Shown: piece after piece, positions 4,311-51,863 of the stretch
Numbering within the stretch: the stretch's first letter is position 1
Layout: every line of letters begins with the position of its first letter
Assembly: GCA_003427395.1 (NCBI GenBank)
Contig: BFEA01000031.1
Location: 1,911,854 to 1,967,849 of the forward strand
Length of the DNA: 55,996 nt
Direction of reading: 5' to 3'
From: Chara braunii
Taxonomy: Eukaryota; Plantae; Charophyceae
The notes under the pieces: model-generated
The model's input: the letters and a program-made list of their open reading frames with translations, nothing else
What the model was told of the DNA's origin: nothing
The model's database searches: none
Position numbers and translations under genes: made by a program

Positions 4311-5785
4311 GCAGCGTCACCCATAAAAAGTGTCGTCGACGGCAGCTTCACCCTTCAAAATAAAGGTGTCATGCCGACGCCGCGGTATTTCGGCAGCATA
4401 ACCCTACAAAAATGGTTTATGGTTGCCAAAAATATCGGTCGGCACACCTCCACCAGTTGTTGTGCTCCCCGTCACTCCTTGCCACGCTGCGCTGCCGCTC
4501 CTCACCACGCTGCCGCAGAGTCCCCCTTGAGACCAACCTGCCAAGGGGTGGAGTATAGTGCTTCAGCCAAGGCTATGGTTGTCTCCTCCCTTGCCATGCT
4601 CCTTTGCTGTCCTCCATCTCCACCGGCAGCACTCCTGCCTCCTCTCAATGACTCCCGCAATGAGGCAAGTGTGCTGTCACACACTGACAGCTGGAGGCAA
4701 GTGTGAGGCAGCTGGGGGACACCTGCCTCTTTCGTAGTGGCTGAGGAGGGCAGCAGCAGCCTCAGCTGCCCCCAGACAAAATTCGTCATTTGCCTGGTAC
4801 CTTACCCAAGGAGAGGGGCATGTGAGCTTTAAAGTGAATGGGGAAAAAAATCGTTTCATATGTGAAAAATGCGAAAAATGTGGTAAGAAAAAATATGTTT
4901 TTTTATACGTGATGTAGTAAGAGAAATCAATAATGGTATGTTGAAGGGATACATTTTTTTTAATATATAAGCTTGAAAAAAAAAAGTTCGTAAAAAATGT
5001 GGGGGGAAAATGAGAGAAAAAAATGAGGTTTCTGCGAACATATGTTTATGTGAACTTAAGATAAAATTGAAAAGGTTTGTGTACACACACATTGTTAAGA
5101 ATCCACAAGATGCACGAGAGTTGCAAAAAATTTACAAGACGCCACAATAATGTGCAATTTTTCGTGTATGCCAAAGGTGTGAGGAATATGCAATGAGACA
5201 ATTATGAGTTTGAAGTAGTGTATACGAAAAGAAACAATTGTACTGAGTACAGAATAAACAACTGTACTGAAAGTATGCAGAGCAAAATATATGGAAATAG
5301 GATTTGCAAACCAAGGAGGGTGAAATCGAAATGAAAAAATTGAGAATAGTTTTGTAGTTCCGAAAAAAAATTATAAATTGTCATTGTTTATACTAAGAGG
5401 TAACTTCAGTAGAGTCATAAAAACGAGTTATAATTGCACTATGGGAAAAATGCAATTTGCAATTGCAGTTCGGGCACCCTACCTGGCCAGAAAGCTGAGT
5501 TGTATACACTGCCCAAACTGCAATTTGAGACTGTATCTTTGACCCATTGTGCAATTATAACTTATTTAATTTCCTATTATACTAATTAGCCCTAGTTGCT
5601 TAAAATTTGAGAGATGTGTTAATAAAAGGTTTGCAAGGGCATTGAATGATATGATTAAGTTTCTTTCATGGAGTTGTCACTTAAACTTGTTGTTCGTAAA
5701 ACATTTATGGATAAAACTCAATTGGACTGAGAAGTGGGTAGCAGTGAAATGAAAGAATGAAAGAGTGTGAGGGATGACCTATGAC

Positions 5786-5804
5786 CTGTCTCTTATACAC
5801 ATCT
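5786..5804 (+). other. Tn5 mosaic end / Nextera adapter (assembly artefact) between two identical 103 bp copies
   Basis: Exact CTGTCTCTTATACACATCT. 5683-5785 is identical to 5805-5907. Confidence 0.95.
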
Positions 5805-6126
5805 AAACTTGTTGTTCGTAAAACATTTATGGATAAAACTCAATTGGACTGAGAAGTGGGTAGCAGTGAAATGAAAGAATGAAAGAGTGTGAGGGATGAC
5901 CTATGACATTGAAGAAATGTTTAGCAAGCCCCCACTACTCGATGAAAAGGGTAATTGGTTGGGTAGTGGGGTTCTTTGCAAAAAAAATGCACAAGAAAAT
6001 CTATGTAAAGAGACGACGGAAATGTGTATCATGAGCAATTAGTGGAAATAAAATTTTCATTAATTAGATTTCTATGGATTTTGAGTTTGACAATACATAC
6101 TTGTATAGTTTGTGGGAATGAAGACG

Positions 6127-6299
6127 TGAAGACAATCACAAGACCAATAATGAAGAAGAAGTTGACATGAGCCTTACTTTTATGGTGTAATCAACTTCCT
6201 CCCAACACTCCCTCGAAGCATACTGTTGAGGAAACCCAATCCTTCTCCTCATACAACACTCAGATTGAGGAAAAACTCTATCGTGTTCTATGCTTTTAT
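6127..6299 (+). repeat. Dispersed ~173 bp repeat; inverted copy at 16270-16442
   Basis: TGAAGACAATCACAAGACCAATAATGAAGAAGAAG...ATGCTTTTAT matches the reverse complement of 16270-16442 with scattered substitutions. Confidence 0.9.
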
Positions 6300-7636: not shown

Positions 7637-10124
7637 AGTATCAGACCCATAACTTCATGTCGCGAGAATCAGGTAGGCACCGCGCGCTGGACTTTTGTAT
7701 AAGAGTCGTGCGCACGCATGGCCTCCTCATATCGGCCAGCCATGCGGGCATTCGCAAGCATTTGCGTTGATGGGGTACTATGTGGTACTCGTAGCCTCGC
7801 GACCCTTGATAATTTCGAAGGTCGCGTTCGACACTCAAGTGTCGGCTGACAGGCGCTTTGAGGGGTAATCTCTCGACGCCAGACAACCACCATGTGCGGT
7901 TGAAGACCACACCCTCTTCTGCACCCTGTGCAGAGGGGTTGAGTAGACAGCTTTAGGGCTGTCGCGGTAGCCAAAATCAAGGGGTTTGACTTTGACGGCT
8001 ACCACGGACTACAACGTCCAACCATGATAACTTAAAAGGAGGAAGCAACTGCAAATAGTCTAATAGCCGTCCCAACTGGAAGGGGTAGGCCAACGCGAAG
8101 GGTGCGCATGGGTAAGGCCCAAAAACAGGCCCGTAGGTCGCCCGACGTTCGAGATGTTGAAGACTCGTATGCGGGGCCCCATAGGCCGATTAGGGATGAT
8201 TCCCTGCCTACACGTCGCTTCGCGCGGCCGAAGCTCGAGCCTACTGGCCATAACGTGCTTTTGCTTTCTCCGCTTGACCCATAACTTTAGAGCGTGGAAA
8301 TCGATAAGTGTTGCGCGTATGGTTTAGTATAAGGCCGCGCGGATGCAGGCCCCACGCATATCAACCAACAATGCGGATTTGCGCACGCAGTCGTGATGTC
8401 GACGCACTATGTGATGCCCATACACGAGTGGCCTTTTTTTGAGCCATGGGGTCGCTCTCGATACTCAGGCGTTGGTTGAAGCGCACGCTAAGGGGGGTAA
8501 ACCTTTAACAAGCGCAAGACCGGCGTGAGGGCCTTACCATCTTTTGCACCCTGAGGTGGCCCAAAGGGTGCGCGGTAAGATGGTCCCTAGGGCAGGAAGG
8601 AATTCGGAGCGGTGGTGAGTTGTCTGGCGCATCACCAGCGACACGCTAATCCTTCCGCCCGAAACTTTATCGTTCCACCAAAATAACCTCAACAAGGATG
8701 AAAAACAAATCCTCTTAACACTATCGGAAGAAAATACCTTCAATGTTAGTCTGGGGCTTGGGACGTTCCGGACAAGGATCTTGGTTTCCAGGCTTGGGAC
8801 AATTGCCCTACCACACGAAGTCAAGGAGAATAGAAGGACGCAAGCGTGTGGTCGCATAGCCCCATAAGGGTTACCCGAGCATACGCTTACTTCGATTATC
8901 ACATCATCGGGCTGGGAAAAAAACAATCTCACCCATAACAACAGGCTGTGGGGTAGTACACTCTCACAACAGTTGTGTGGTTTGCCCATCTGAATTCAAA
9001 ACATAATCACTCAATCATGAGTCAAATGAGACTCTTCCATACATACCTGCAATCATATACACAACATTCAAANAACATCACNCGNGCTAAAANGGGTCAA
9101 CTTTTCAGCCTCCTGCAACTCACACCCTGCCTTATGCACTCAAGCCCAACCATTTCCCCATCAATCCTTAACAAAGGTACTCAGTCTTTCAGAAATGACC
9201 CTTTATAAAGAAGCTGGGTGAAAACCCAAAGAAACACACAAATCCTGGCAAGGGCCAAGGCCTTAGGTTGAGAGGCAGGAAAAATAGGAAAGTTGAGTCG
9301 TAAACCGATGAATCGGCAACCGACCTGTTATCAGTGATAACAGACAAGTGATCCCTTCGTAGAATCAGGCCGAACAATTTGAGCCTACAATCGGATGTGA
9401 AAACCTGCATCACAGTATTGGTCAAAGAGAACCACTACTATGTTCAACCCAAGTAGAGGATAGTTCCCCAATTTGTACCCTAGCTCCTCTATCAGTCTCA
9501 CGTTCAACTTCCCTCACTAACGCCGAGTCACTGAGAAAATTGGCAGCATCTCCCCTATCTAGGGTGGATTTGTCAAGTCTCTCTTGGCTAATAATAATCT
9601 AACTCCCTAAATTCTGTGAAATTTCGGCAGCGCTTCCCGTAGGAAAAGTGCCTTTCCAGAATTTCTAAGAGTCAAAAAAATGACTAACTTTTTCAGATTT
9701 GCAGAAATTTCGGCAGCGCTTCCCGTAGGAACAGAAGGTTGCCAAAATTTATATAAAGCTGAAACTGAAAAGACAAGGCATAACTATACTTGGGACTAAC
9801 TTCTGACACTTATTTAGAAGGTAGAATCAGCGATAATCTGTACGACCTCTTGATGAGGCTGTGTGATAACACTGATCCTAACTCCTAGTAGAGTCAGTTC
9901 TATATTATCCCAAACTTTCCCTCCCATCATCCATCCTACCTGCCTATAGCTCTAGCACTCGGCAAGCACCTAAAGCAACTAAACTATCAAAGAGATGCCC
10001 CAGAGTGGGAACCCACAAGCATGCATAACCAAACATCTCTCACAATCTCACATTAATTTAGTCCAAGTAGTTCGTTAAATCGCTTAGTTCCTTCCCTTTT
10101 ACATCCCCCTTTCCTATGGCATAC

Positions 10125-11377
10125 GGTCAAACAAGGCCCTAACCCTAGGGTATGCCTGACCTGCTTAGGTACACAATTAAAGTACGCACATTTGGACTGC
10201 CCTAACCCTAGGGTATGCCCAACATAACATGAACTGTACACATAAGGCATATGACCAGACCGCCCTAACCCTAGGGTACGTCTAGCTTCTGCCTAACTGA
10301 CGACAAATAGCATAGAACTGGGCTGCCCTAACCTTAGGGTGTGCCCAATTTGCTTTAAACAAAGTTACATACAACATCATTCTATACCATCCCTACCCAG
10401 GGGTAGGTCTAGCTTGCCTGAACATAAATACAAACGACAAAAAGTTGGACCGCCCTAACTCTAGGATACGTCCAACCCACAGCACATCTACGACAAAAGC
10501 ATATCACTAGGCCGCCCTAACCCTAGGGTACGCCTAGTTAGCCATACAGTTTAAGTTACATAAGGCAATGTGATCAGGCTGCCCTAACCCTAGGGTGTGT
10601 CTGATCTGCTTGAACAGTTATAAACACCGAAACGCTGGACCGCCCTAACCCTAGGGTACGTCCAACTTACTTTAAACAACAAAGGCTTATCGCTAGGTCG
10701 CCCTAACCCTAGGGTACGCCTAGTTAGCCATACAACAGAAAATAGGGTACAAATACTTTCACAGACTTTATGTTTTTCCTTCTCTTATTAAGCTGTCGAT
10801 CGAACCTTTCCAATAATGGAACTTTCGATCCTGCCTCATGTCTAGAAGGGAAAATAAAACAAATTTATACTAACTCTCTGCTCCTTAGTGTTATCACGAG
10901 CATATAATTGAACCGCCCTAACCCTAGGGTACGTTCAGACTGCCCGGTTACCTTTGTTTTACTCTTCACCTCTTTCCCTCTTCCTTAGTTCTACCTGACT
11001 TACTGATTGGCTTTCCTCACACGGGGTGTCCGTCTGTCAGAAGTGTAAGTTCAATAAAATATATATATCAAAATTTATACTTTTGCTTGGCCAGTTAATT
11101 CGTGGCTCATGACTAAGCCGCCCTAACCCTAGGGTACGCTTAGTCTTATGCCGTTACTCCCTCAGAAGAAAACACGCACCGCAACTCATTAAAATAAACA
11201 CCAGGATTCTGAGCCTTCCCCACCCGGGGTGCCCGTTCTCCTGTTCAGAAACCCTCAAATAAAATAACGACCGATCCTATCCCACCCAGGTAGACCAGCT
11301 ATAAGAGTCACTCATTCAGATCAGCAAACCTCAATAAAACATAGCACTGAGTCCACATCCACCCGGAGGGGCTCAGC
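10125..11377. other. Array of ~16 conserved-structure hairpins (core CCCTA-ACCC-TAGGG, covarying outer stems)
   Basis: Core starts at 10137, 10200, 10263, 10326, 10391, 10453, 10515, 10582, 10643, 10701, 10916 and 11121. Degenerate units have loops at 11019, 11222, 11284 and 11361. Outer arms are self-complementary but differ between units. Confidence 0.9.
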
Positions 11378-13455
11378 CTTGGGTTGAGCCGGTCAAACGC
11401 ATGCATAACCCTTTTCTCCCACCTTCCCCTAATTCGTTCCGTCTGAATTCACTCAAGGGTTATCTGTTCTCTCATATATAATTGTTCATTAAACCTTTCA
11501 CAGTGCATGTCCTGTCAAACATAATAATCAGAAAAAGTAGTAGCCTCTCACATATACGTTCTGATACCCAAGGGGATAGCAGATAGGGGAAGGGATCACA
11601 CGCGTCAAACAAGAGTTATACCTGCAATTCTCTGCCTCCAGAACCCTGCCTGGGTTCCTGCAGAGCTCCCGCAATCGGTGGGGCAAACCCCCCACAGAGG
11701 CCTTGGCGCGGATTACAGGTTTCAATCCCGCTTGCCGCCTTCCTCTCGACATCAAAAGACTAGACTGAGAGTAAGAATGGCAGAAGAAGAAAGTTCAGAC
11801 TCTCAAGATACGGGAGAGGTTCACTCAGATTTGCGGGAGAGGGCCTTGTAGTCTTCAACTCCTGAGGGCCCCTCAATGATGGCCAATAAACGCAGTGAAG
11901 ACTATTAAACAACAACCGAAACGTAGAGTAACAGTCCTCCAACAAAACTCCAACTCGCAGTAGCGACCCCGTCGTGAAGAGGAAATGGTGCACAGTGGTG
12001 ACGCGCAAATGAGGAGCAGTGATCCGGGCAGCAGCAACGCCCAACTCAGTTTTCGTTTCTAATAAAAGCACTGCGTCCCACGTACAAGAAGCTCAGAGGC
12101 GCAATCTTACCGGTCTGCCCAAATGTGCACTCCGCATGCCCCCAATGACCGAAGTCCAACAACAATAAACCTTGGTAACCGATCTACGGCAGCAGCTCAG
12201 GTCGTCATTGCCACTCCTGAAAGCACGAGTAGCTGTTGCAGCAACCGTCCTAATGGCATTTGGTAGCTGCAGCGGTAATACTGTGGCATCAGCTACCCTT
12301 GCTGCAGCAACTTACACTGACTGTTGTGGCTCAAGTAACGAACTTTAGCAATGGCGGCCCACCGTGGTGAACAGTGCCCTGCAATCAATGCTATCGAAGA
12401 AAGCAGATGCTGTATGGACGGCGCAAAAAGTACCGAAATAACAACAAGTGCTACGTTGATTACACAGCCGTACCACTGACCCTGACAACAGTAATCCGGT
12501 ATGATGCGACAGACACCGCTACACTCAGTCAGCCACACTGGTTGTCCCGCCGCTACAACGGTACCACCGACCTGGTCACAGGCAACAACTTAACTTAGGA
12601 TGACTGCAGACTGTCGGAATCATAGTCGTTGTGAGCCTAAACTTGAGATGTCGGCAGCAACAACTCCTAGTGGTTCGGGCATAAGTACTTCAGCATCGAA
12701 CGAAGATCTGCATCAAGCTCCAAGCTACTGCTGCAACTCTTACTTGCAGCCACAACTCCTCAGACGTATAATCATCACCCCAGGGACAAACGACAATTCG
12801 ACAGGCTGGACGGCAGCAACACCCCAAATATAAGCAGACCGTATCTTCTTAACGTAGCCACAGTCTGACCGTGCCGCTGGCCCCTCCCCTCTTAATCACG
12901 AAACGTAGTAAACGAAAGTGAGTCTTTCGTTCAAAAACTGAGGAAGACGCACCGACATACCATCCCGACCTTTATCATTGTCTTGGCTCCCGTGCGTTCG
13001 AGCACGACAGGTGAGGTAAGTATTTGTCAGCCCTCGCTCTCACCACACTTCTCCCTTTCGTTCGTGCTCCTTCCTCCTACTTTCTCTTTCTTATAGTCTC
13101 ACCCTCGTTCTCTCTCATGATACCAGGCAACATACTCTAATGACAACCACGATTGTATGAGTAATGACGCATGTTATCGCGATAGCAGCAACGAACAACG
13201 TTTGAACTCAAAGAGGTGATCACAAAAACGGACATCACGGTGAGGCACGCCGGATCAAGACAGCGGTTGTGGTTAAGAGCGGAGGGGCGTTGCAACAGAC
13301 CTCGCCCCTGTACTCTACAAATATGCAAAATGAGAATGAATCTTCCGTTAGAAATGCGGCCAGATGCAGCATCCACTATCCCACCGAGTGAGTCCACAGT
13401 TTGCCACCGTAGCTCGACGCTCCGTTCTTCTGCAATCACCAAATAGTGGCGAGTG

Positions 13456-13456
<1 letters not shown>

Positions 13457-13530
<74 letters not shown>

Positions 13531-13550
13531 TTCTCTCTCTCTCTCTCTCT
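13457..13550. repeat. (CT)n microsatellite
   Basis: Read directly from the sequence. Confidence 0.98.
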
Positions 13551-14134
13551 GGTTCCTGCACGCACTTACGGTTGAATCCGACTGGTAGTTGCAACCATCA
13601 GGCACGACGAGCATCTGCACTCAAACCGGGATCGCGAGCATGATCACTTGTGGCGAATGCAATCAAAGAGCAACATCGTGAATGAAGACGACGGTGATGG
13701 CCCGATGAAGATGACTGCGGCGAACTGGACGTAGGCGAGTACCACGATAACATGGGGGCGAGGATCATGGCGCGGCGATGGAAACCACAACCACGACCAC
13801 CACCATGAATGAGAATGATAGACGTCAAAACAAACTGTGCGGCCAGGTAAGTATCATTTTCCTTCTCTCCTTCGGCTCGACCCCCGCCTTGCCCCTGCTC
13901 ATGTAAAGCTACCAATGAACCTGGCCGAGACCTTGGCCGCATGCATGCACACTGATGATGAAGAAATAGCATCGCCCGTCACAGGTGCTTCAATGGCGAT
14001 GAGGCAAGGGGTGGATTTCCCGCTAGAACACAGCTAGACACTTCGCCCGCTGGTCACCAAGCCTACAAAATGAGAATGAATCTTCCGCTAGAAATGCGGC
14101 CAGATTCATTACTATACTCAACCTCTGATAGCAA

Positions 14135-14699
14135 TGGCGCAGCCCCTGTTGCTCAGATCCTTCTCTCCTATCTCTCTCTATACTAAACCTACACCAAAAC
14201 TAATCTCGGATTTGAATTCGCCCTACCTCATAACCCTGAAAACGTCCTTTACCTCGCCCTATTCCATCAACGAATGAGCGAACTACACCGTCTTCTATCC
14301 TCTTCTTCCCTCTTCCCCGTCGCATCCGTCTTCTTCTTCCTTTTCTTCCGCCTCGTCTGTTGCTAACGCACGCGTTCCCACTTAACGCTGCTTGCCACTA
14401 TGCAATCCCTCAACAGCTTGTCTTCGAAACAGCAGCGTCCTCGTGCCTTGCTGTCGGGCTCACTTCATATAGTACTCCTTGCAGCCTCCCGGCATAAGTC
14501 AGCGTGGGATGAATCTGATCAAACACGGCGCCAGGTTCATCCCTCTAGGCAAAGAGGCATAAAAGCCAGAACCATCTTCAAAGCGACGACAGAAAAAAAA
14601 GAAAAAAAAAAAAATTATATATATATCGTCACAAACAGAACTGCCCGGTAAACCGTAGGCAGAGAGAGAGAAGAGGACAACAAACGAGGGGCTGTGACA
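14135..14699 (-). mobile_element. Probable retrotransposon 5' LTR with adjacent tRNA-iMet-like PBS
   Basis: TG...CA ends with short inverted termini TGGCGCAGCCCC / GGGGCTGTGACA. On the minus strand it is followed by TGCTATCAGAG (14133-14123), one mismatch from the PBS TGGTATCAGAG. A related terminus GGGGCTGCGACA occurs at ~43964-43975. Confidence 0.45.
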
Positions 14700-15111
14700 A
14701 ACTGTTTCGTCGGAGTTTCACCGACTCATCAGGATGACTTCACCCTTGCACTTCCCTACTTGTATTTTACCGTATTCACGTATTGATACGAACGTGAATG
14801 CTCCTGCCTGCAGTGGTGAATGCTCTGACTGAGCCAAGCCATTTGGTTTTACTACAGGCCTCGGAACTGTTGCCAGACTTACAGCAGAAGTTGCTTCGCA
14901 AGACTACAACTCAGGGAGCAACAAGCCCCCGGATTTTCAGTCACCCACACATAGCCCAAATGCCCGTGACCGCCCCCCCAGCTGGGGTATTGCTCCATCC
15001 TTAACAGATGTCCCGGAGGACTCAGACAGGGCGGCGGCCCTGAAATATCATCCCTGGCAGACCGGTCCTTTTAATAACCCAGAGTTCATAGTATCATACT
15101 CACCCACTCTC

Positions 15112-16269: not shown

Positions 16270-16442
16270 ATAAAAGCATAAAACACGATAAAGTTTTTCC
16301 TCAATCTGAGTGGTGTATGAGCAGAAGGATTGGGTTTCCTCGACAGTATGCGTCGAGGGAGTGCTGGGAGGAAGTTGATTACACCATGAAAGTTAAGCTC
16401 ATGTCAGCTTCTTCTTCATTATTGGTCTTGTGATTGTCTTCA
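16270..16442 (-). repeat. Inverted copy of 6127-6299
   Basis: Reverse-complement match. Confidence 0.9.
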
Positions 16443-22846: not shown

Positions 22847-23091
22847 CTCTGACTCAGCTTTTCCGACCGATCTCGACTTTTCCTGTCTGGCCCCTTCACT
22901 GTCCCCCTCTCACTCTGTTTTTCCCACCGATGTAGACTCTTCCTGTCCAGTCCTTTGACCAAGGCTCACACTTTGACTCTTTCTGACCGATCTTGACTAT
23001 TCCTGTTTCACCCCTTCACAGTCTCCCTGTCACTCTGTTTTCCCCACAGATCTAGACTCTTCCTGTCCAGTTCTTTTGACCAAGGCTCACA
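22847..23091. repeat. Tandem duplication of a ~120 bp pyrimidine-rich unit
   Basis: Two copies ending TAGACTCTTCCTGTCCAG...TTTGACCAAGGCTCACA. Confidence 0.85.
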
Positions 23092-24596: not shown

Positions 24597-25096
24597 CAGC
24601 TCAACTCTAACAAGGTCTGATAAACAACAAGCCTCTGTGACACATAGTCACCAGCATACTCAACCTGTCGAGGAAAGGCCCTGAAGTGGTGGGACTTTTC
24701 ACACCCCTCAAAGTGCTCAGCAGAGGACAATTTTCACTACCACTTTGACCACTCAGCCCTGCAGTGGTGGGGCTTTTCGCACCCCTCAAAGTGCTCAGCA
24801 GAGGACAATTTTCACTACCACTTGGACCACTCAGCTTCCTCAACGCTGCCGAGATCATGTCTTCAATCTTCTCAAAATCAAAAGCAGCAACAGCACTGTA
24901 CAGTCCCCAGATGGCCTCAGGTCTTCGACTTCCAATCCACATCCACAGTATGATCTTTGAGGTTCGCACCTTCGTGATCGTTGGCCCATTCCTCTGAGGC
25001 AGCAAAGTTTCCACACTGAGTTGTCGAGCGAGAGGAACGGAACGACAACTGTTGTCATGGGGCCATACACCAACTCTGTCAAAACTGCGTGCAGAT

Positions 25097-25187
25097 GTCC
25101 CATCCGCCAGGAGATCCCATTAAAATTGGAACGATACAGACAAGATTAGCCTGCCCCCTGCAGAACGATGACGCACAGATTGGGAAA
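25097..25187 (+). pseudogene. U6: U6 snRNA pseudogene (diverged, near full length)
   Basis: GTCCC...TAAAATTGGAACGATACAGACAAGATTAGCCTGCCCCCTGC...GATGAC. The ACAGAGA box is mutated to ACAGACA. Confidence 0.85.
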
Positions 25188-25487
25188 CAATCAGAAAAGA
25201 ATAAAGAAGAATGCAGGTGTACAAATCGCTTACTTGTGTGACAAAAGTTTGAAAGAATCGAAACAAAGGTACGTCAGGCCATAAAGCACAGCAGGATCAG
25301 GCTACTACAGAGCCCATGTGGCCGAATGGCAGCCGCATGTAAGTGTCAGTAGAGAGAAGATGAATTTGACTAAAGAGAAGATGGAATCAAAGTTATCAAA
25401 CTAGCACAATAAAATTATGAGCTACCCTCCCTTTGGGGGAAAAAAGGATGATCAGGCTACAGAAAACTAAGGAGTCTCATGTCCTTG

Positions 25488-28183: not shown

Positions 28184-28750
28184 CTGAGTAAAGTGGTGCA
28201 GCTGAGTACAGTGGTGGAACTAAGTCCAGTGGTGGAACCAAGTCCAGTGGTGGAACCGAGAACCGTGGTGGAACCGAGGACCGTGGTAGAATTCGGTACA
28301 GTGGAACCGAGTTCATAAGCAGTGGAACTGAGTGCAACGGAAATCGATATATTGAAACTTGGTAGACTGGAACTCAGTAGAGAGTACAGTGGTGGAACTG
28401 AGGACTGGGGTAGAATTCAGTACAGTGGAACCGAGCTCATAAGCAGTGGAACTCAGTACTGAGTACAGTGGAACTGACTGTGGTAGAATTCAGTACAGTG
28501 GAACCGAGTTCATAAGCAGTGGAACTCAGTANCTGAGGACTGTGGTAGAATTCAGTACAGTGGAACCGAGTTCATAAGCAGTGGAACTCAGTACTGAGTA
28601 CAGTGGAACTGAGGACTGTGGTAGAATAAAGTACAGTGGAACCGAGTTCATAAGCAGTGGAACTGAGTACAATGGAACTCAATATATTGAAACTTGGTAG
28701 ACTGGAACTCAGTACTGAGTACAGTGGCGGAACTGAGTACAGTGGAACTC
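28184..28750. repeat. Complex minisatellite built from CAGTGGAAC(T/C)GAG / GAGTACAGTGG motifs with higher-order units
   Basis: Many imperfect copies, including repeated GGTAGAATTCAGTACAGTGGAACCGAGTTCATAAGCAGTGGAACT. Confidence 0.9.
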
Positions 28751-30296: not shown

Positions 30297-33200
30297 TCAA
30301 GCGGATCCTTCCGAATTCAGCTGCTGCCCCTGACGCTTCTTCACAACTCCACGCCAACCAATAACAGGAGGGATGGGTTTTTCCACTCCCCAGCCGTTGT
30401 CACGGGGTCTGGATACAATGTGACTCAAGTCGATGATGTTTTGCGAGCCTGTCTTTTCTGCTTGCTGCTTTTTCCCGAGAACTCCACGTAAGTCGATGAT
30501 TTTCGGTGGTGTCTTGCCTTCTTCACAATTTTCTTTGCGACTCTTGTTTTGCTCTCTTGCACCAACATTCTGAGGACTCGCGTCTGTGTGATCTTGATTC
30601 TCTCTGTCAGGGTTACTGGCGATCTCCTTAGCTCTGAAAAAGGCGTTAGCATCTCCACTGTTGTCAGCATCTACATCAACCACACACACATCTCCACTTC
30701 TCATTGGGGCCAGGACCAAATCACCAGCGGCGGACACTTCACCACTGTTTATATGAAACCCTTGATCTTCCTGCCACTTACTCTTGCTTCCATTGAATGA
30801 ATTGTTGACAGGTTCATGGCCTCTGGAAAAACCCTTTCCCTCTCCGATGTTGTCCGCATCTCCATTTCCCAGTGCCGCGATGGCCAAACCATTGGCAGAG
30901 GACACTTTGCCCCATTTTTCATCGACCTCTTGCTCTTCCTGCTGCTGCATACTCTTGCTCCTGTCATATGGATTGTTAATTGCCCGACCTGCATTTTCAC
31001 ACATCGCACCGTCGCCACTCGCATTGCTCAGCTGCATACACGAACTCTCAGCTTCCTCAAACCCACCCTCTGCTCTCTCACTCCTCCCACTCTTGATCCC
31101 GGAGTTGCATGTGGCTACACCAAGCATCAGGGATGTGTTGAAGAGCTCGAATTCTACCCTGGACATTTTGCTCTCCTGCCGTCCATCTTCTTTGACTAAA
31201 TTACACAAATACACAGCGTTCCTGTTCGGCGAGGCATGTCCGTCATCAACCCTTACAGTGTCAGGACTTCTCCGCTGTTCGCTGCTCCTGCGCTTGCCAC
31301 CCTTGCTCTGAATGTAGCATTCAGTATCATCCGATACAACCATGCTCACTTTTTCTCTGCCATCCATTCCCTTCTGGCCGCCCACGGTCGTCTCCTCATC
31401 GTGACTGTCACAAACTACAATCGAGTCGCCCGCATTACCACATGAGACTGGTAGTTTCGCTTTCGCCAACGACTTCTCATCCCTCTTGCAAATCCCAGGA
31501 GTCTTCTGCTCTTCTATTGCCCCATACTTGCGACCTTGAATTTCGATAGAGTTTTTGGCAGTCGAATATGCAACTGGAAACTGCGCATTCCTCACTGTTC
31601 GCTCATCCGTCGTGCCAGTGCCAGGGCTCCTTTGGTGTTCCATCACTTCATGGTCACTGCTGCAGTCCTTCATTTCAATTTCAACCGATCTTGTCGAATG
31701 CTCATTCGCGTCCCTTGCACCAGGGTTAGAAATCATCTGTTGTTCTGCTCTCCCGATCTTGCTGCCGTCAATTTTGGTGCCACACCTGTTCGCATCACCT
31801 GAAATGCCAGGCAAATCACTGTTCGCCACCAACCTGTCCTCCGTACAAATACGGTTACTCACAATTGGCTGTTCTGCCTGCTCCTCGTGGCATCCCATGA
31901 TTTCTATCACTCTGTTCCCGTTATCGCACAAAACCGACTCTGCTAGGTTCACCACAATGGTGAGACGGTTCTCATCAGGCCCATCAGCTGTTTCGATCAT
32001 CATCCCTGAGCGGACTTCCTTTGTATCATCTGTTGTTTGCATCCCTTTCCCTCTTCCCACTGACTGCAGCTCATGTTCAATTTCCCTTTTACTCCCACCA
32101 GTTCTGGCGACATCCTTCCCCGGAAGACACCTTTGTAGTTCTTTTTCCTTGTGGTTGTCATCCTCAACTTCAATTGGGTGCTTGACAGGATCACACAGAA
32201 CCAGCGATTCGACACTTACGGCATGTTGATCATCCATCTTGCTGCTGCTCGGGTTCTTCTGCCGTTCTGCGTCTTTGTGTGGACAGTTTCCAGTCTCTTC
32301 AGAGCAGTGAGAAGCATTCTGTAATTCAGGCGATATGACGCTCATGACCAACCCGTCGTCCATATTATCAATACACGCCGGAGCCGCCCGTCCTGCCTCC
32401 TCATGTGCTCCTTGGTCTTTTCTAAACTTTGGCATGTGCACAATTGCAATGACTTCAAGCTCAGACTTCGCCCCGTCGACTCTCTGATCATGGCACGGAG
32501 ATGGACATCGAGGCTCCTGAATTTTGATCCCATCGTCTGGTGCGCACATCCCTTCCCCGCATCCCTTCTGCTGGCTGATACAGTCCACATCCTCCTGCCC
32601 TTTGTCTGGGGAGGAACTCTCCTTCCCTAAGGTCTGTGGCTTCCCCCTACCGTCATCAGCATCGTCATCCATCAAGTCAATAATATCCCACGGCAATCTC
32701 GGTGTTTGGTTATCATTCTCTAATGCAACCTTGCCAGAGCGTTCTGATAAAGCTGCTTTCTGGCATGGTGAGGACGCCTGTCCTATTCCACACTCCGTTT
32801 GACTACCATCACTTGCAAATAGGATAATGTAATCTTGCCCGTTCCTTACCTGACTTCCTCTCCTGTGATGGATAGGGGAAGACGAGTTACTTCGTCTGTC
32901 TTGACAACCAGAACCTCTGCGAGCCTTCCCTTGTCCCTCTGCTGCCAAACTACTGCATCCAGTGTCCTCTTCCGCTCTGCAAGGGCCCACAGCCACACAA
33001 TCAGAATCTCTGTCATTTTGTGATGCTGCACCCCTCCTGCTCTGCTGCGTAGGAGCATCTACAGTTGCCGGTTCCCCTGGTGGAACGTCGATGAGCTCTT
33101 GGTGGTCCTTGCATGAGCTCTTGTTTGCTGGCACTTCATTACAATCAAAATCCCCCTCCTTGATCGAAACAACATCAGGAGCATCACGCTCATGCTCTCG

Positions 33201-33461
33201 TTTCCTCTTGCCGCTATGTATAGCTGCTGACGGCTTATTGCCCAACTTTACAGCACAGTCAGTAGATGAAAGTGACACAGCAGACGTAGCCCGATTTGCC
33301 ACACGTGTTTCATTTTGTTTTGCAGCATCATGCTTCCTCCCATCAACGGCAACAAACATCGACTCCGTATCTGACGCACAGATACTCTTATCATGCTTGC
33401 GCCTCTGCGACCCCTCCTGATCTTCACCATGTTGTTCCTTAGCTTCCACAGCCACATTAGC
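30297..33461 (-). CDS. Terminal exon (1054 aa, disordered, SIM-rich) of the ULP1/OTS-like SUMO protease gene
   Basis: Long uninterrupted ORF with a phase-0 acceptor TTGCAG|GCT at 33461 and stop TGA at 30299-30297. Motifs are shared with exon 46562-44466. Linkage to the protease is inferred from strand, phase and paralogy. Confidence 0.7.
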   Translation of the reverse strand, partial: ANVAVEAKEQHGEDQEGSQRRKHDKSICASDTESMFVAVDGRKHDAAKQNETRVANRATSAVSLSSTDCAVKLGNKPSAAIHSGKRKREHERDAPDVVSIKEGDFDCNEVPANKSSCKDHQELIDVPPGEPATVDAPTQQSRRGAASQNDRDSDCVAVGPCRAEEDTGCSSLAAEGQGKARRGSGCQDRRSNSSSPIHHRRGSQVRNGQDYIILFASDGSQTECGIGQASSPCQKAALSERSGKVALENDNQTPRLPWDIIDLMDDDADDGRGKPQTLGKESSSPDKGQEDVDCISQQKGCGEGMCAPDDGIKIQEPRCPSPCHDQRVDGAKSELEVIAIVHMPKFRKDQGAHEEAGRAAPACIDNMDDGLVMSVISPELQNASHCSEETGNCPHKDAERQKNPSSSKMDDQHAVSVESLVLCDPVKHPIEVEDDNHKEKELQRCLPGKDVARTGGSKREIEHELQSVGRGKGMQTTDDTKEVRSGMMIETADGPDENRLTIVVNLAESVLCDNGNRVIEIMGCHEEQAEQPIVSNRICTEDRLVANSDLPGISGDANRCGTKIDGSKIGRAEQQMISNPGARDANEHSTRSVEIEMKDCSSDHEVMEHQRSPGTGTTDERTVRNAQFPVAYSTAKNSIEIQGRKYGAIEEQKTPGICKRDEKSLAKAKLPVSCGNAGDSIVVCDSHDEETTVGGQKGMDGREKVSMVVSDDTECYIQSKGGKRRSSEQRRSPDTVRVDDGHASPNRNAVYLCNLVKEDGRQESKMSRVEFELFNTSLMLGVATCNSGIKSGRSERAEGGFEEAESSCMQLSNASGDGAMCENAGRAINNPYDRSKSMQQQEEQEVDEKWGKVSSANGLAIAALGNGDADNIGEGKGFSRGHEPVNNSFNGSKSKWQEDQGFHINSGEVSAAGDLVLAPMRSGDVCVVDVDADNSGDANAFFRAKEIASNPDRENQDHTDASPQNVGAREQNKSRKENCEEGKTPPKIIDLRGVLGKKQQAEKTGSQNIIDLSHIVSRPRDNGWGVEKPIPPVIGWRGVVKKRQGQQLNSEGSA

Positions 33462-33596
33462 CTGCAACATCCACACGTCAATATCACAGGAAAGGGCCGA
33501 CAAGGAGATCTCAGAAAGTACAAGGGTACCTGTTGCGGCTTTGCTCACAAAAAAATGGAGAGAGAAAAAAATGAGAAGAGGTGTGGGGGGGGGGTC

Positions 33597-34798: not shown

Positions 34799-34827
34799 AG
34801 GGTTTAGGGTTCAGGGTTTAAGGTTTA
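34799..34827 (+). repeat. Short degenerate interstitial TTTAGGG-like tract
   Basis: GGGTTTAGGGTTCAGGGTTTAAGGTTTA. Confidence 0.5.
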
Positions 34828-41479: not shown

Positions 41480-42885
41480 GGGAGAGTCTATGTCACCCCA
41501 AGTCCAAAGGTTACCAGAACAGTTTGTCAACGTGCTGGAGGAGCCCAAGGGAACAATAGAGAGGCCAATTAAGCATCACATTGAGATAGAGCCAGGTAGT
41601 AAGATTCATAAAGTCTCATTTACAAGATGGCACCAAACAAGCTAAGAAGAGCTAGAAGACAAAGGGTGGATTAAGTCAAGTTCACCTCCCTATGGTGCAC
41701 CTGTCTATTTGTTCCTGAAAAGGAAGGAGAGCTAAGACTGTGTATAGACTTTACCGGTCTGAATGCGATAACAATAAAGAATGGAGAACCATTGCCCCTT
41801 ATCGATCACCTGCTAGAGACGTTGCAGGGCTGTAAGTATTTCTCTAAGATAGACTTGAAGGCAGGGGATCATTAGATTGAAGTGGCTCCTGAAGATAAGC
41901 AGAAGACAGCTTTTCGAACAAGGTACGACCACTACCAGTTTAATGTGATACCCTTTGGTTGGACTAATAGCCCTGCTACCTTCCAGCGTTGTATGAAAGA
42001 CTTATTAGCCGACTGGCTTGACATATTTTTTGTCGTATATACTATATTTACTATTTAGATGATATATTAATTTTTAGCAGGACTTTAAAAGAACATGAAG
42101 AGCACCACGAAGTCCTGACTAAGCTTAGAGGGAATAAGTTAAGGTAAATCCCAAGGAGTGTCCTGACTAAGCTTAGAGAGAATAAGTTAAGGTAAATCCC
42201 AAGAAGTGTCGTGACTAAGCTTAGAGAGAATAAGTTAAGGTAAATCCCAAGAAGGGTGACTGGGCTAAGCAGCATGTGTTGTATCTCAGTCATGTCATAG
42301 ATGTACAACCTGATGATAGTAAAATTGCACCAATTAGGGACTGGCCGACGCCAAAGAACATCATAGAATTGCGCTCATTCCTACCACTGGCTATAGTAAG
42401 TCCGTCAAAAAAAATTCTACTAAGGCTGCACCACTTCACAGATTGTCGAAGGAGGAGTTGTGGGACAAGGACTGCACTTCATCCTTTAAGAAGTTGAAGA
42501 AGGCGTAGATTGAGTACTGGGTGCCGAAGACTGAAGATCCATCCTTGCTTTCTGTGGTGACCACAGATGCTAGCCAGTATGGAATAGGAGCGGTGCTGTA
42601 GCAGGAAGGTGGCAAGGGCTATAGACCGGTAGAGTTCATGTCCAAGAGACTGCCACCAGAGAAAGTAGCTGACTCTACCTATGAGTGAGAATTGTGTGCC
42701 CTCTATGAAGATAGTTGAAACCAGTGAAGGGGAAGTATAATGTTGCCGCCGACGCATTGTCCAGAAGAGCAGATTTTCTGGGATGATAGCTACTTACTTA
42801 GATACGGGAAAGGACTTGCAGCAAAAGATCAGAGATGCTTATGACTCAGATCTGATCTATAGGGAGGTTATAGCTGTCAGCAAAC
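41480..42885 (+). pseudogene. Ty3/gypsy pol (RT + RNase H), degenerate
   Basis: IKHHIEIEPGS...GWIKSSSPPYGAP...LRLCIDF.GLN.ITIKN.EPLPLID...FSKIDLK...KTAFRTRY..Y.F.V.PFG.TNSPATFQ...YLDDILIFS...TDASQYGIGAVL...ELCAL, with stops and frameshifts. A 48 bp unit is triplicated at 42112-42255. Confidence 0.95.
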
Positions 42886-44465
42886 AATACCATGTCATAA
42901 CAACACGCTCTTGTATGAAATTCCTCCCATCAAGCTTCCAATCAGGTCATCCCCATCCACCACCACCATCCCGCCCCACGTGTCAGCACCCGCCCCCATC
43001 CCATGCATTACCACCCATTCCCTGCCCATTTGACCATCACCCGTGCCCATTCCAGCATTATCGCCATTCCCCTTCCAGTTGCCCCAAAAATCTGCCCCCC
43101 TGTCCATTCCAGCACCACTTCCCATTCTCAGCCAATGTCCAATCACCCGCATCCATTCCAGCACCACCTCCCTTCCAGCTCTCTCGCACTAGTCACTTGT
43201 GAACTTGCAGCTTTCTGGCTGTCTTCTGTATATCCCCAAACCCCCACCGTTCTATTGCAGCAAGAGAGGTCTGCAAGACTAGTTTGCACATAGCACGTAC
43301 TACCTATCACAAGGCCGTCGGTCCGGTAGCACCCGATGGCCCGGACCGCAGATTTGTTACATTTCTTCGACAATCTGGGCTGTCAGTCCGGCAGGACCAC
43401 GACGGCCTGGATTCAGATTTTTGACGCTAGCGATTTTAATAATGTAGGGATGAGAAACACTGTATCACACAATCAGCACATACTAACTATCATGAGAAAC
43501 ACTGTATCACACAAGCTGAAGCGCAAGGGTTGGCACGTCCTATGTGACGTCAAACACATGAAATTTGCAGAGCGGTGCACTCATTGAGATTGAGTGGGCA
43601 GCTGCGAAGGGGACAGCTTGAGAGCTGTGGAGGTCACTAGGTGCCATTTCCTGTCACGCCCATTCAGAAGACGAGGCAGCAGCAGCAGGAGCAGTGACAG
43701 GAGGCAGAGTTACAGCAGCAGCCGCAGCAAAAGGAGGTGGGGATGGAGGCAAAACGAACACGAAGGTGTCGATCAAATGATGCCAGAAACAACAGTGAGG
43801 ACGAAGAAAAGAAGCAGCAGAGAGAATGACGAAGAAAAGGACTCGTCCTCATAGGAGGATCATGAAGAGGACAGGGGGCAAGGCACCTCCAGAGTAGGAC
43901 AGTAGGAGGAACCACAAGCATGCCATGAAAAACACAGACGCATTTCATGAAGGCTGAAAATTAGGGGCTGCGACAAATGTGATCCTGATGAACCCGAGGC
44001 ATGCTAAATACATGGTCACATATATTGTCACGTATCTATGAACTAAATGAGCGCACTTTGTGAAACAAATGATAAAAATAGAAATACACAAGACAAACAT
44101 GGTCACATATATTAACCCTGAAACCCAGATCTCTCAACCATGCCAACAATCAGAAACCTCTTCGTTCCCTCGTCCCCTGTCCCTGCCACCCATCTCGCCA
44201 CCAAACCCTCCTCTCTTTCCCTCCCTAGTCCCTTCCCCAGCAGCAGCCCCCACCCGACTTCTAATCACCACATATAGTGCATGGTACATCCAGGCCATTT
44301 GCAGCACAGCATCCTACCTTACTCATTCCAGTAGTCAGCATGAGGGGCCATCCACGGCTAAGAGCTTGCAGGTGGCTTTTTCAATGAAACAAGGCCCTCT
44401 AATCTGGCCGAATGAACATTCAGACATCAAGCCAAGTCCCAAAAGAGGACAGAATTTCAAGGTAC

Positions 44466-46562
44466 CTTGTCAACAGTTTCACTTGAGCTGATGATAAAGC
44501 CTCCATTCGCACGGCCGTTGTCACAGGGTCCACTGAAGACAACCAGGCTATCTCCATCTCCTTCATCTTCGATGCCGTGGTCTGTTTCACTCAAGTTGAT
44601 GACTGTGCACACATCGCCATCACCATCGTCAATTTCACAAACACCTGTTCTGTAATCACCTGCAATTCCATGTGCGCCAACACTTGGAGTCTTGTCCACT
44701 ACCATATCTGCAACCTTATCCACATCCACCTCTTCCCTAAGAATAATCCTGTTGCTACACCCAGTTTCTTGATTTTCTTTGCATCTTACCACAGTTGACG
44801 CATTTTCATGGTCACTATCAATGATGAATACATTTGTTTTTGGTCCTGACAAGCTATCTGTACTACATGCTCTAGACATCTCCCCATTGTGCTTCCCATC
44901 TTGCTCTTTAGCACCCTGCTGCTTGCTCTCCTTTTGACTGCTTGCCCTTGCATTTCGGCCTGTGTACTCCAATTCTATCAAGTCCTTGTTTGCACTTCCC
45001 GATTTCATGCATGGACTTCTCTCCTTTTGAAACCTGCGTCCATCTTGTTTCCTCTGCATGGTGCTCCCAAAGGCGTTCTCAGATGCTCCTTCTCTGCTCC
45101 GTCGCCGATAGACAACGACCGGTCGCATCCCTTCCTTTCCTTTAGAATCTTCCTCCATCCAATTATCACAGTACGCAACAGTAGACTCGCTGTTTGCCGT
45201 TCCTCCATTTTGCAACCTGTTTTTGCGGCCATCCTGCTGCTGCTGCTGCTGCTGCTGCTCCGCTGCAAGCTGCACACTATTCACATCTTTCAAAGACCCC
45301 ACACATCTTCCACCTCCGAGTTCACATTCTGCAGCAAACTTGTCCTCCAGGGGGCATCCCACCATGTTATGTGTTCCTTGAGGCTGTTTGCGTGTCTGTT
45401 CCTGCACCTCGTTTGCATCATCAACAACTTGAACCTCAGAGCTACCACCATGATCCCTACGCTGGGGTTGATGCAGATGCTCATTCTTTTCAATTGTCCT
45501 TCCAAGTGCACATCCACATTCACTCTCTCTCCTGTCCGTGCTGCTTCGCTCAAACTCACACACACATTTATGATCACCCTTCCCCATGCTCCCAAGCTTC
45601 TCACAGTCATCTTTGGATTTGCAATTGAAGTCATTATCATCATTATCATCATCATCATCCATTAAATTGATGAATCCTCTACAACAGATTGATTCTCTCT
45701 GCTTGTCATCTGATTCAATGATGGCAGTGCATTCTTCGGCGATAGCACAAGTTGAAGCCTCAGCTCCTGAACTTGGTTTGCCAGGGGTTACTGTGCCTGC
45801 ATCTAATCGCTGCAGTGCTGCCAGGTCATTCCTGCAGTTGCTTGCATCTGAGCTCCCATAACCATTTTTTTCAGCCTGCACTGCCAGACTGTCTCTTCCA
45901 CCATGGCTGAAGAAACAATTCTCAGCCTTCCCTCCAATCTCCAGGCATGTGCTCTGGCCACCACCCTCGCGGCATGCTCCCATCACTCCATCCTCATTAG
46001 CTGCAGGGCTTGATCCATGTCCTAATGCAATTGGCCGCGTCAATTCCACATCCCTTCCCCCTCCTACAAGGTCACAAACTGCAGGCCCACTTCTGTCTTC
46101 TGTATTACCTACTTGGCCTCTATGTCCCTGTTGAGACATGTCTCCACTCTCTATCTCCCCTGCCAAGTGTCCTTGAATATCACCTGTTCTCAAAACATTC
46201 GATTCTCTGCGGCCATCTTCACCACTCATAGCCTTGGTTGGGACAACATCCATATCTGTGGCATCATCCTCCCGCTTCCGTTTGCGGCTGCCATTACCCT
46301 GTGCAGTTTCCGCTGCACAGTCCCCATCTGTACTGGTGCATGTTTCTTCCTCTGTTTCTATATCAGGGTACAGAGGAAAGGTCTTTGGGAAGACCCCATT
46401 CCCCTCTTCCAGCACAACACGCCCTTCTGTACCCTCTGGATCCATGCCATCAGCTGTCATCAAGGTCACTTCTGGTGTTGGCCTGCTTCCACGTTTCTCA
46501 TGTACTTGTCTGACCTCAAAATCAATTCCATTTTGTTCACGACTTTGCAGGGTTACTTTTTC
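44466..46562 (-). CDS. Large exon (699 aa, disordered, SIM-rich) of the ULP1/OTS-like SUMO protease gene
   Basis: Pyrimidine-rich acceptor CTTTTCTTGCTGCAG|GAA (phase 0) and candidate donor AAG|GTACCT (phase 0). Open frame with an NLS-like RKRKRE. Confidence 0.8.
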
Positions 46563-46790
46563 CTGCAGCAAGAAAAGGAGCCAGCAACTTCACTAGTGAA
46601 AAGAAACAGCAAGACAACAAAAGGTATCTTGACCTGGTATTCTATACCTGCACTGTAACTAGGTAGCCCCTAACACTATCGTGCTCATTTTGTTTGACTA
46701 CGATTCAAAATCATGATCTACTTCCTAATAGTTACATGTGTGTCACTGTTCACATGCGTGTCACCATTCAGCCACATGGGCAGGGTACCT

Positions 46791-51200: not shown

Positions 51201-51740
51201 TCTGCTTTTGCCAAATGTTACGCCAGGCACACTCTTTCATTTCGGAAGACATTCTGAAAATGGCATCTTTTGATTCTTTTCCAATTTCCACTCAGTCCTC
51301 TTCAGGCGTCACTACTATTCACACCAACACCATTGACAGCAACTGCTTCTCCTACAATCACATCCCCTTCTCTTTCATTTTCCCCTCCATACCTTTGCAA
51401 TCCGTCTACGTCTCCAATCATCTCACCCAAAATTCACCCCTCTAATTTCTCATTCTATTTATGTCCAGTGTCGTTGGAAAGAGTTGGCAATATGGAATCC
51501 CGCACCATATCCCCACAAAGCCGAAACACTACTTCAGAGAATCAACGGTACTGAATACTTACTCTGACATGCATACCAGCATAAAACTCACAATCTACAC
51601 ACACACACAATAAAGAGCACCCCCACAGTCACTTGAAAACCCAAACAGTCAACCACCGACTTCTCTCCCCAACTCAAATCTCCCCATCTGTTGATCCATT
51701 GTTCGACTGAATGAAAACATGCATACATTCTTTTTTTTTT

Positions 51741-51833
51741 AATGTGGACCATTTCTCGATTTATGCGTGACATCCATCCGCAGGGGCCATGCTAATTTCT
51801 TCTCTGTATCGTTCCAATTTTAACGGATGTCCC
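51741..51833 (-). pseudogene. U6: U6 snRNA retrocopy with A-tail (plant-type 3' end)
   Basis: The minus strand reads GGGACATCCGTTAAAATTGGAACGATACAGAGAAGAAATTAGCATGGCCCCTGCGGATGGATGTCACGCATAAATCGAGAAATGGTCCACATT, then A10. Confidence 0.9.
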
Positions 51834-51863
51834 ACAGGAAAGAAATACCATTCTTTTTTTTAT

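Follow-up and report, generated by a model that had tools for sequence, protein, structure and literature searches.

A tandem array of covarying hairpins with a constant apex in a high-copy repeat of Chara braunii

Introduction

Ten consecutive hairpins in the genome of the charophyte alga Chara braunii carry nearly the same tip, while the stems below it differ from one unit to the next. What keeps such a series paired, and what might read it, are the questions raised by this locus. The preliminary description, made from the letters alone, proposed that the units arose by tandem duplication and diverged with the fold and the cap kept, in a way that neutral decay does not readily explain.

The window analyzed here is a stretch of 55,996 nt (contig BFEA01000031.1, positions 1,911,854 to 1,967,849, forward strand), and all coordinates are counted from its first letter. 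Its content is eukaryotic: microsatellites are numerous, and the window also holds two U6 snRNA genes, a telomere-like run of plant type and the decayed remnant of a Ty3/gypsy-like reverse transcriptase (RT). The two U6 genes or pseudogenes, at 25096-25203 (+) and 51738-51845 (-), scored 53.9 and 73.5 bits and showed about 80% identity over 75 nt. The telomere-like run, (AGGGTTT) x 4, lies at 34799-34827.

Results

Layout of the array and its core

The array consists of ten units (u01 to u10) at 10116-10736, with a period of 58-67 nt, and is followed by two lone units (u11 and u12, with cores at 10916 and 11121); all are listed here without a strand. The start-to-start distances were 63, 63, 63, 63, 64, 62, 67, 61 and 58 nt, then 215 nt from u10 to u11 and 205 nt from u11 to u12. 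The layout proposed for the ten units, a core between YG and TRY enclosed by two complementary arms, was borne out, and every arm pair listed before was present as written.

The common core of the units is CCCTAACCCTAGGG, 14 nt long. It was found in exact form in nine of the twelve, starting at 10137, 10200, 10263, 10515, 10582, 10643, 10701, 10916 and 11121. The cap, described before as invariant, is constant in most units but not strictly so: there was one mismatch in the core at 10326 and two in that at 10453, and the fifth unit (10389) was degenerate, with a shifted variant, CCCT-ACCC-AGGG, that retains the ACCC loop. Every copy is oriented on the + strand. With up to three mismatches allowed, 15 matches to the core were found against 3.2 expected, a number reached by none of 100 shuffles.

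With units that are only some 67% alike, the array escaped Tandem Repeats Finder. The linkers are A-rich and diverged, as had been noted, but they are not unrelated. Whole units are homologous, and the likeness extends beyond the hairpins (72% identity over 300 nt at an offset of 190 nt, or three units). A covariance model built from the twelve units matched these twelve and no further ones in the window. The other arrays of about 60-nt period in the window (22847-23067 and 28186-28750) contained no conserved-loop hairpins.

Anatomy of the unit

On either strand, the unit folds into a tiered hairpin made of a basal stem, an outer stem, an internal loop, an inner stem and a 4-nt loop. The basal stem has 3-5 bp, mostly GGCA/TGCC, also GCA/TGC, and GGCT/AGCC in u10. 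Such stems had been claimed for several units and were seen in most of the unit folds. The outer stem of 7-8 bp covaries between units. Above it is an asymmetric internal loop, with CG on the 5' side and TAC on the 3' side in seven units and TG/TAT or TG/TGT in three; the remaining two units are odd. The inner stem is constant, with 5-6 bp of CCCTA/TAGGG including an extra G.U pair on the + strand, and closes a loop that reads ACCC on the + strand and GGGU on the - strand. Spacers of about 12-15 nt, A-rich on the + strand, separate the hairpins. RNAalifold, run unguided, gave the same two upper tiers on both strands.

Exact cores were present in u02 (10191-10223), which has a TG/TAT junction; u03 (10254-10286), with a GGCA/TGCC basal stem; u07 (10506-10538), with a perfect 7-bp outer stem; u08 (10572-10606), with an 8-bp outer stem containing one G.T cell (10600) and a basal wobble (10610); u09 (10634-10666); and u10 (10692-10724), in which the GGCT/AGCC basal stem is a compensated change relative to GGCA/TGCC. 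The edge unit u01 (10126-10160) has four nucleotides, AAGG, in place of CG before the core and two A.C cells in its outer stem. Unit u04 (10317-10349) has the loop variant ACCT and a TG/TGT junction. In the degenerate u05 (10380-10412) the ACCC loop sits on a shifted CCCT/AGGG stem, and u06 (10444-10476) combines a core with two mismatches and a perfect 7-bp outer stem. Both lone units, u11 (10907-10939) and u12 (11112-11144), have exact cores. The outer stem of u12 is perfect, and this unit showed the strongest excess stability among the units (z -4.9 on the + strand and -4.6 on the - strand).

The core holds a perfect 10-nt palindrome, ACCCTAGGGT, in nine units. The covarying arms were centered on the ACCC loop (alignment column 31.5) and not on the center of the palindrome (column 34.5), which is three columns off. 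This symmetry about the loop indicated that the arms are tied to the hairpin.

Several smaller features were observed around the units. Junction columns 23 and 41 of the alignment of the units (10116-11156), beside the inner stem, co-vary in a non-Watson-Crick manner, with C/C in seven units and T/T in u02, u04 and u08. Both columns are within CpG, and the pattern may reflect either constraint on a pyrimidine-pyrimidine mismatch or CpG decay in parallel. Another two-tier hairpin lies between the array and u11, at 10797-10835 (+), with a GATCGAA/TTCGATC outer stem, a TTCCA/TGGAA inner stem and an AUAA loop. A small distal hairpin at 11218-11229 (+), CCCC-ACCC-GGGG, displays the ACCC loop on a different stem; as a relative of the units it was not significant by the covariance model (11196-11261, 9.2 bits, E 4.8).

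Pairing of the arms is maintained

Covariation was examined in the twelve units of this one copy, together with a table of variants from mapped reads of other copies. By pairwise identity, the units agreed most in the core (0.90), less in the two arms (0.52 and 0.59) and least in the flanks (0.46 and 0.35). The 7-nt arms, 52-59% alike between units, have drifted about as much as the linkers.

The pairing nevertheless persisted. Among the 84 outer-stem cells, 69 were Watson-Crick pairs, four were G.U on the + strand, seven were A.C (G.U on the - strand) and four were other combinations. The mismatches had been described as nearly all wobbles on one strand, more often the minus strand. This was true in part: seven of the 15 are wobbles on the minus strand and four on the plus strand, but four are wobbles on neither, and the bias toward the minus strand was not significant.

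Of the seven outer pairs, six showed compensated double changes between two types of Watson-Crick pair. At 17/45, for instance, seven units have A-U and five have G-C, and none has a mismatch. All four combinations of pairs 17/45 and 19/43 occurred among the units, so that a single ancestral split cannot explain them.

Column shuffles did not reproduce this pattern. Standard pairs made up 92.3% of the cells compared with 83.8 +/- 1.4 in the shuffles, and doubly changed cells numbered 22 compared with 9.9 +/- 2.4. Neither value was reached in 500 shuffles, nor was the covariation score. When one partner was slid by 1-3 columns, pairing fell to 12-46% of the cells. The shuffle and slide controls gave similar results on the minus strand.

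Since column shuffles ignore the relatedness of the units, tree-aware simulations were also performed. A perfect ancestral stem was allowed to diverge neutrally under four models (star or coalescent tree, 90% or 100% transitions), and runs were retained only if the mean pairwise distance between arms agreed with the observed 0.44. The simulated stems kept on average 34-47 Watson-Crick cells, with a maximum of 68, compared with the 69 observed; none of 3000 runs reached the observed number in any of the four models. The covariation thus persisted once the history of duplication was modeled, and the controls, the RNAalifold folds of both strands and the simulations together upheld the proposal of tandem duplication with fold and cap kept.

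The changes between close relatives were of the same kind. Between units whose flanks suggest a sister relation, the changes were fully compensated; u04 and u09, for example, differ by two double changes and no single ones. Transitions made up 90% of the differences in the arms, compared with 40-43% in the flanks, where the alignment is uncertain. This excess is consistent with stems that changed by way of wobble pairs; mutation driven by methylation would likewise favor transitions. The array as a whole folded better than its shuffles on both strands (z -8.96 on + and -4.52 on -). We conclude that selection acts on the pairing and, with high confidence, that a single-strand fold and its apex are what is kept.

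The carrier is a high-copy repeat

Reads from one DNA run and from three runs of poly(A) RNA were mapped on 9094-15000 (Ns are present near 9073-9093). The summed depth of DNA contig words was 1,700-119,000 over 9094-11851 and fell to 57-170 over 12049-13230. Many variant contigs and joints were found over the region, as in an interspersed high-copy repeat. The proposal that the array lies within a repeat was confirmed by this depth. We place the non-coding carrier at 9094 to about 11900, where 9094 is the start of the mapped part. The region 8000-12100 had no second copy anywhere in the window.

At three stem positions the majority letter of the family differs from that of the window: A to G at 10130 in the outer stem of u01, T to C at 10600 in the outer stem of u08, and T to C at 10610 in the basal stem of u08. 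All three majority letters restore Watson-Crick pairs, and the letters in the window are products of G-to-A or C-to-T change. This indicated that the family as a whole pairs better and that the copy in the window is decaying.

Depth was extreme at 9291-9881 (60,000-119,000) and at 14610-14806 (about 1.6 million). The latter segment was strong in each of the three RNA runs, where many reads continued into dissimilar sequence, and is probably a short, very abundant expressed repeat.

The carrier had been suggested to be a retroelement. This was not supported in the window, where no LTR pair, primer-binding site (PBS), polypurine tract (PPT), gag or pol was found linked to the array. The carrier could be a solo LTR or a truncated copy. 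A brute-force search for TG...CA ends with target-site duplications gave eight candidates, such as 5688/5810-11944 (TGTTG...CAACA, AAACT), which is at chance level, and one left end fell inside an assembly artefact. This artefact, at 5682-5907, consists of an exact 19-nt Nextera/Tn5 mosaic-end adapter (5786-5804) between two 100%-identical 104-nt copies; the duplication is not biological. A PBS-like, tRNA-iMet-like site at 11558-11569 (-), with two mismatches and no preceding CA, was no better than chance; three such matches were found where 4.3 were expected.

A 173-nt inverted pair, 6127-6299 (+) and 16270-16442 (-), is 93.6% identical, has sharp ends and brackets 10.3 kb including the array. 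It was considered as terminal inverted repeats and rejected for want of a target-site duplication; it probably represents two copies of a short dispersed repeat.

No coding signal was found within 20 kb of the array, in terms of Pfam hits, zinc-knuckle motifs or RT motifs. Pfam found no families in 36 open reading frames (ORFs) of the window. Protein homologues were found neither for the ORF across the array (65 aa) nor for those in the segment of 37,000 depth (75 aa) and of 1083 aa. The last of these (30297-33548, -) and another long frame of 704 aa (44457-46571, -) have an acidic or serine-rich disordered look and no Pfam family. Exact look-ups of two long ORFs returned no record. The only RT remnant in the window, at 41740-42420 (+), lies 30 kb off with other features between. 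It is decayed, with YLDDILIFS at 42052, many stops and a 48-nt tandem repeat, and Pfam returned nothing on the neighboring ORFs.

Transcription and the choice of strand

Poly(A) RNA over the array was absent in two of the three runs. The third gave 0.2-3x depth with mates in both directions, and these reads came from other copies, because they carried the family-majority letters. The transcript envisaged for the array was therefore seen as a trace in one run, contributed by relatives of this copy, and the carrier is almost silent in the three runs.

Several observations pointed toward the + strand, on which the loop is ACCC. The excess of folding energy over shuffles was larger on this strand (the z-scores given above), and ten of the 12 single units had a more negative z on it. 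The downstream stretch 10737-11400 was more structured than its shuffles on the + strand only (z -3.21, compared with -0.96 on the - strand and -1.67 for an upstream control). On this strand the closing pair 24/39 is a G.U in 11 units and an A-U in the remaining one; on the - strand the G.U would be A.C. The linkers are A-rich on the + strand.

On the other hand, wobbles numbered seven on the - strand and four on the + strand, or six and three after correction to the family letters, a difference that was not significant. Nucleocapsid proteins prefer G-rich loops, which would favor the - strand with its GGGU loop.

Database and literature searches

The preliminary description recognized no described element in the array, and the searches agreed. 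At gathering thresholds Rfam matched only the two U6 genes, away from the array, and at E<=1 it gave nothing in 9000-12200; its models of CsrB/RsmZ-type families did not match the array either. In a metagenome scan, pairs of cores 35-60 nt apart were found in 24 contigs; these were telomere-like CCCTAA/TTAGGG repeats of unrelated organisms throughout, and no homologue of the array was among them. The 19-nt core with its junction had no match in viral contigs and three isolated chance matches in prokaryotic genomes. In the literature, a full-text search for the core led only to work on human telomere fusions, and searches on Chara LTR elements and on tandem stem-loops in LTRs gave nothing relevant.

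The resemblance to a CRISPR array without cas genes, remarked on earlier, is superficial. CRISPR repeats are near-identical over 23-55 nt and alternate with unique spacers of similar size in prokaryotic genomes. Here only 14-19 nt of the unit are constant, the remainder is homologous, if diverged, to the neighboring units, and the genome is eukaryotic.

Discussion

A possible docking platform

We interpret the array as a cis-acting, multivalent, protein-docking platform of hairpins on the RNA of a very abundant mobile repeat, and put the probability of this reading at roughly 50%. The element would be transcribed, and each unit of about 50 nt would fold independently into its tiered hairpin. 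The hairpin would present the constant apical module, a 5-6 bp stem with a 4-nt loop (ACCC in a + RNA, GGGU in a - RNA), to a sequence-specific RNA-binding protein. The likeliest candidates for this reader would be the Gag/nucleocapsid of the element itself or a host factor for export or stability. Ten to sixteen copies of the module would provide avidity. The outer and basal stems would need only to pair and could drift by compensated transitions, and the A-rich linkers would prevent neighboring hairpins from mispairing. The outcome of binding may be packaging, export, stability or escape from silencing.

Some of the findings count against this platform. The core is conserved far beyond the needs of pairing, and a binding site in double-stranded DNA would also explain this. 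RNA from the locus is nearly absent, and none of gag, pol, an LTR pair, a PBS or a PPT is tied to the array in the window.

Alternative explanations

The core may instead be a repeated site for a DNA-binding protein, so that the array would act as a cis-regulatory element in double-stranded DNA, an enhancer or silencer of the repeat. Candidate sites are the palindrome ACCCTAGGGT, which could bind a dimer and is perfect in nine units, and the telobox-like AACCCTA, which could bind a Myb factor of the telomere-repeat-binding type and has nine occurrences in the array against two in the rest of the 56 kb. A DNA site would account for a core that is 90% identical between units amid surroundings of 35-59%, and for a locus that is nearly silent in RNA. 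It gives no reason, however, for 7-nt arms and basal stems to covary, nor for the arms to be symmetric about the ACCC loop, three columns from the center of the palindrome. The canonical plant telobox, AAACCCTA, is absent from the window, where only the 7-nt AACCCTA inside the cores was found, and the uniform orientation of the cores is not required by a palindromic dimer site. We regard this explanation as unlikely.

The hairpins could also form in single-stranded DNA, as intermediates of reverse transcription or as structures recognized by an HUH-type or rolling-circle transposase. DNA hairpins tolerate G.T wobbles, and covariation cannot separate single-stranded DNA from RNA; the scarcity of RNA, and a carrier without an assigned class, are in keeping with such a process. 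No Rep/HUH protein, transposase or other coding capacity was found nearby, however, the 173-nt inverted pair (6127-6299 and 16270-16442) lacks a target-site duplication, and we know of no system of single-stranded DNA recognition with 10-16 internal hairpins. These points make the explanation improbable.

We give equally little credence to a palindromic satellite without function, in which pairing would be kept by extrusion of hairpins or cruciforms followed by mismatch repair, or by short-tract conversion between arms. The array is indeed tandem and has grown partly by block duplication, this copy decays through C-to-T and G-to-A substitutions, and the variation in the arms is nearly all transitions, as in a methylated genome. 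The neutral models failed by a wide margin, however. Repair would not hold an asymmetric 4-nt loop and the core constant, and unequal exchange within identical cores should have yielded chimeric units with mismatched arms, of which few were seen. Conversion between arms of 7 bp that lie 24 nt apart is, to our knowledge, not an established mechanism.

A precursor that is processed to units of about 60 nt or to small RNAs, in the manner of a polycistronic miRNA or siRNA-type cluster, would suit the regular unit size with one hairpin each, but is very improbable, as the helices (5-6, 7-8 and 3-5 bp) are broken by internal loops and form no continuous stem of the roughly 20 bp that Dicer-like enzymes use, Rfam gave no match, and the poly(A) libraries, which would miss small RNAs, showed no pile-ups or ends of reads.

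Relation to known systems

As a docking platform, the array resembles several known systems in working principle only and is a member of none of them. The A-repeat of Xist, a mammalian lncRNA, has 7.5-8.5 conserved GC-rich hairpin cores with U-rich linkers and is bound by SPEN. Like the array, it strings together short, conserved hairpin modules with variable linkers in which one base predominates; in Xist these modules form a multivalent protein platform. There is no sequence relation. In Xist the sequence of the cores is itself conserved; in the array constancy is limited to the apex, the stems covary, the host is an alga and the carrier is a high-copy repeat.

In the CsrB/RsmZ sponges, many hairpins likewise display one short loop motif, which titrates a protein. 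These RNAs are bacterial, have GGA loops and come from single-copy, abundantly expressed genes, unlike the array.

Packaging signals of retroviruses and retrotransposons share stable stem-loops with short exposed loops. In HIV-1 psi, the G-rich tetraloops of SL2 and SL3 are bound by the zinc knuckles of nucleocapsid. The GGGU loop, if the RNA is of the - strand, would resemble such tetraloops, a likeness offered as a lead. Psi regions have two to four different stem-loops in place of the 10-16 copies of one found here, and no Gag was found in the window.

Engineered MS2/PP7 tagging arrays follow a like design: the apex that binds the protein is constant, and the stems and spacers are varied, which limits misfolding and recombination. 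They are synthetic, whereas the array is natural and its partner protein putative.

A bolder version of the docking platform, which we consider doubtful, is that each abundant retroelement family of this alga carries its own "barcode" of 10-16 hairpins. The constant apex might then be read only by the Gag of that family or by a dedicated host factor, giving family-specific packaging or cis-preference, and the loops would differ from family to family. In such a case the apex CCCUA-ACCC-UAGGG, or its complement with a GGGU loop, would be a natural counterpart of MS2-type RNA tagging.

Implications

If the core proves to be a DNA site instead, it would remain remarkable that pairing has been preserved around a regulatory motif. 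If the hairpins are docking sites on the RNA of a transposon, they would constitute a natural multivalent RNA tag, uncatalogued in Rfam and unfound in the literature searched. Such a tag would offer a ready system for studying how mobile elements specifically recognize their own RNA, and would be a source of orthogonal RNA-protein pairs. It could also help to explain how the 2-Gb genome of this alga came to be filled by a few repeat families.
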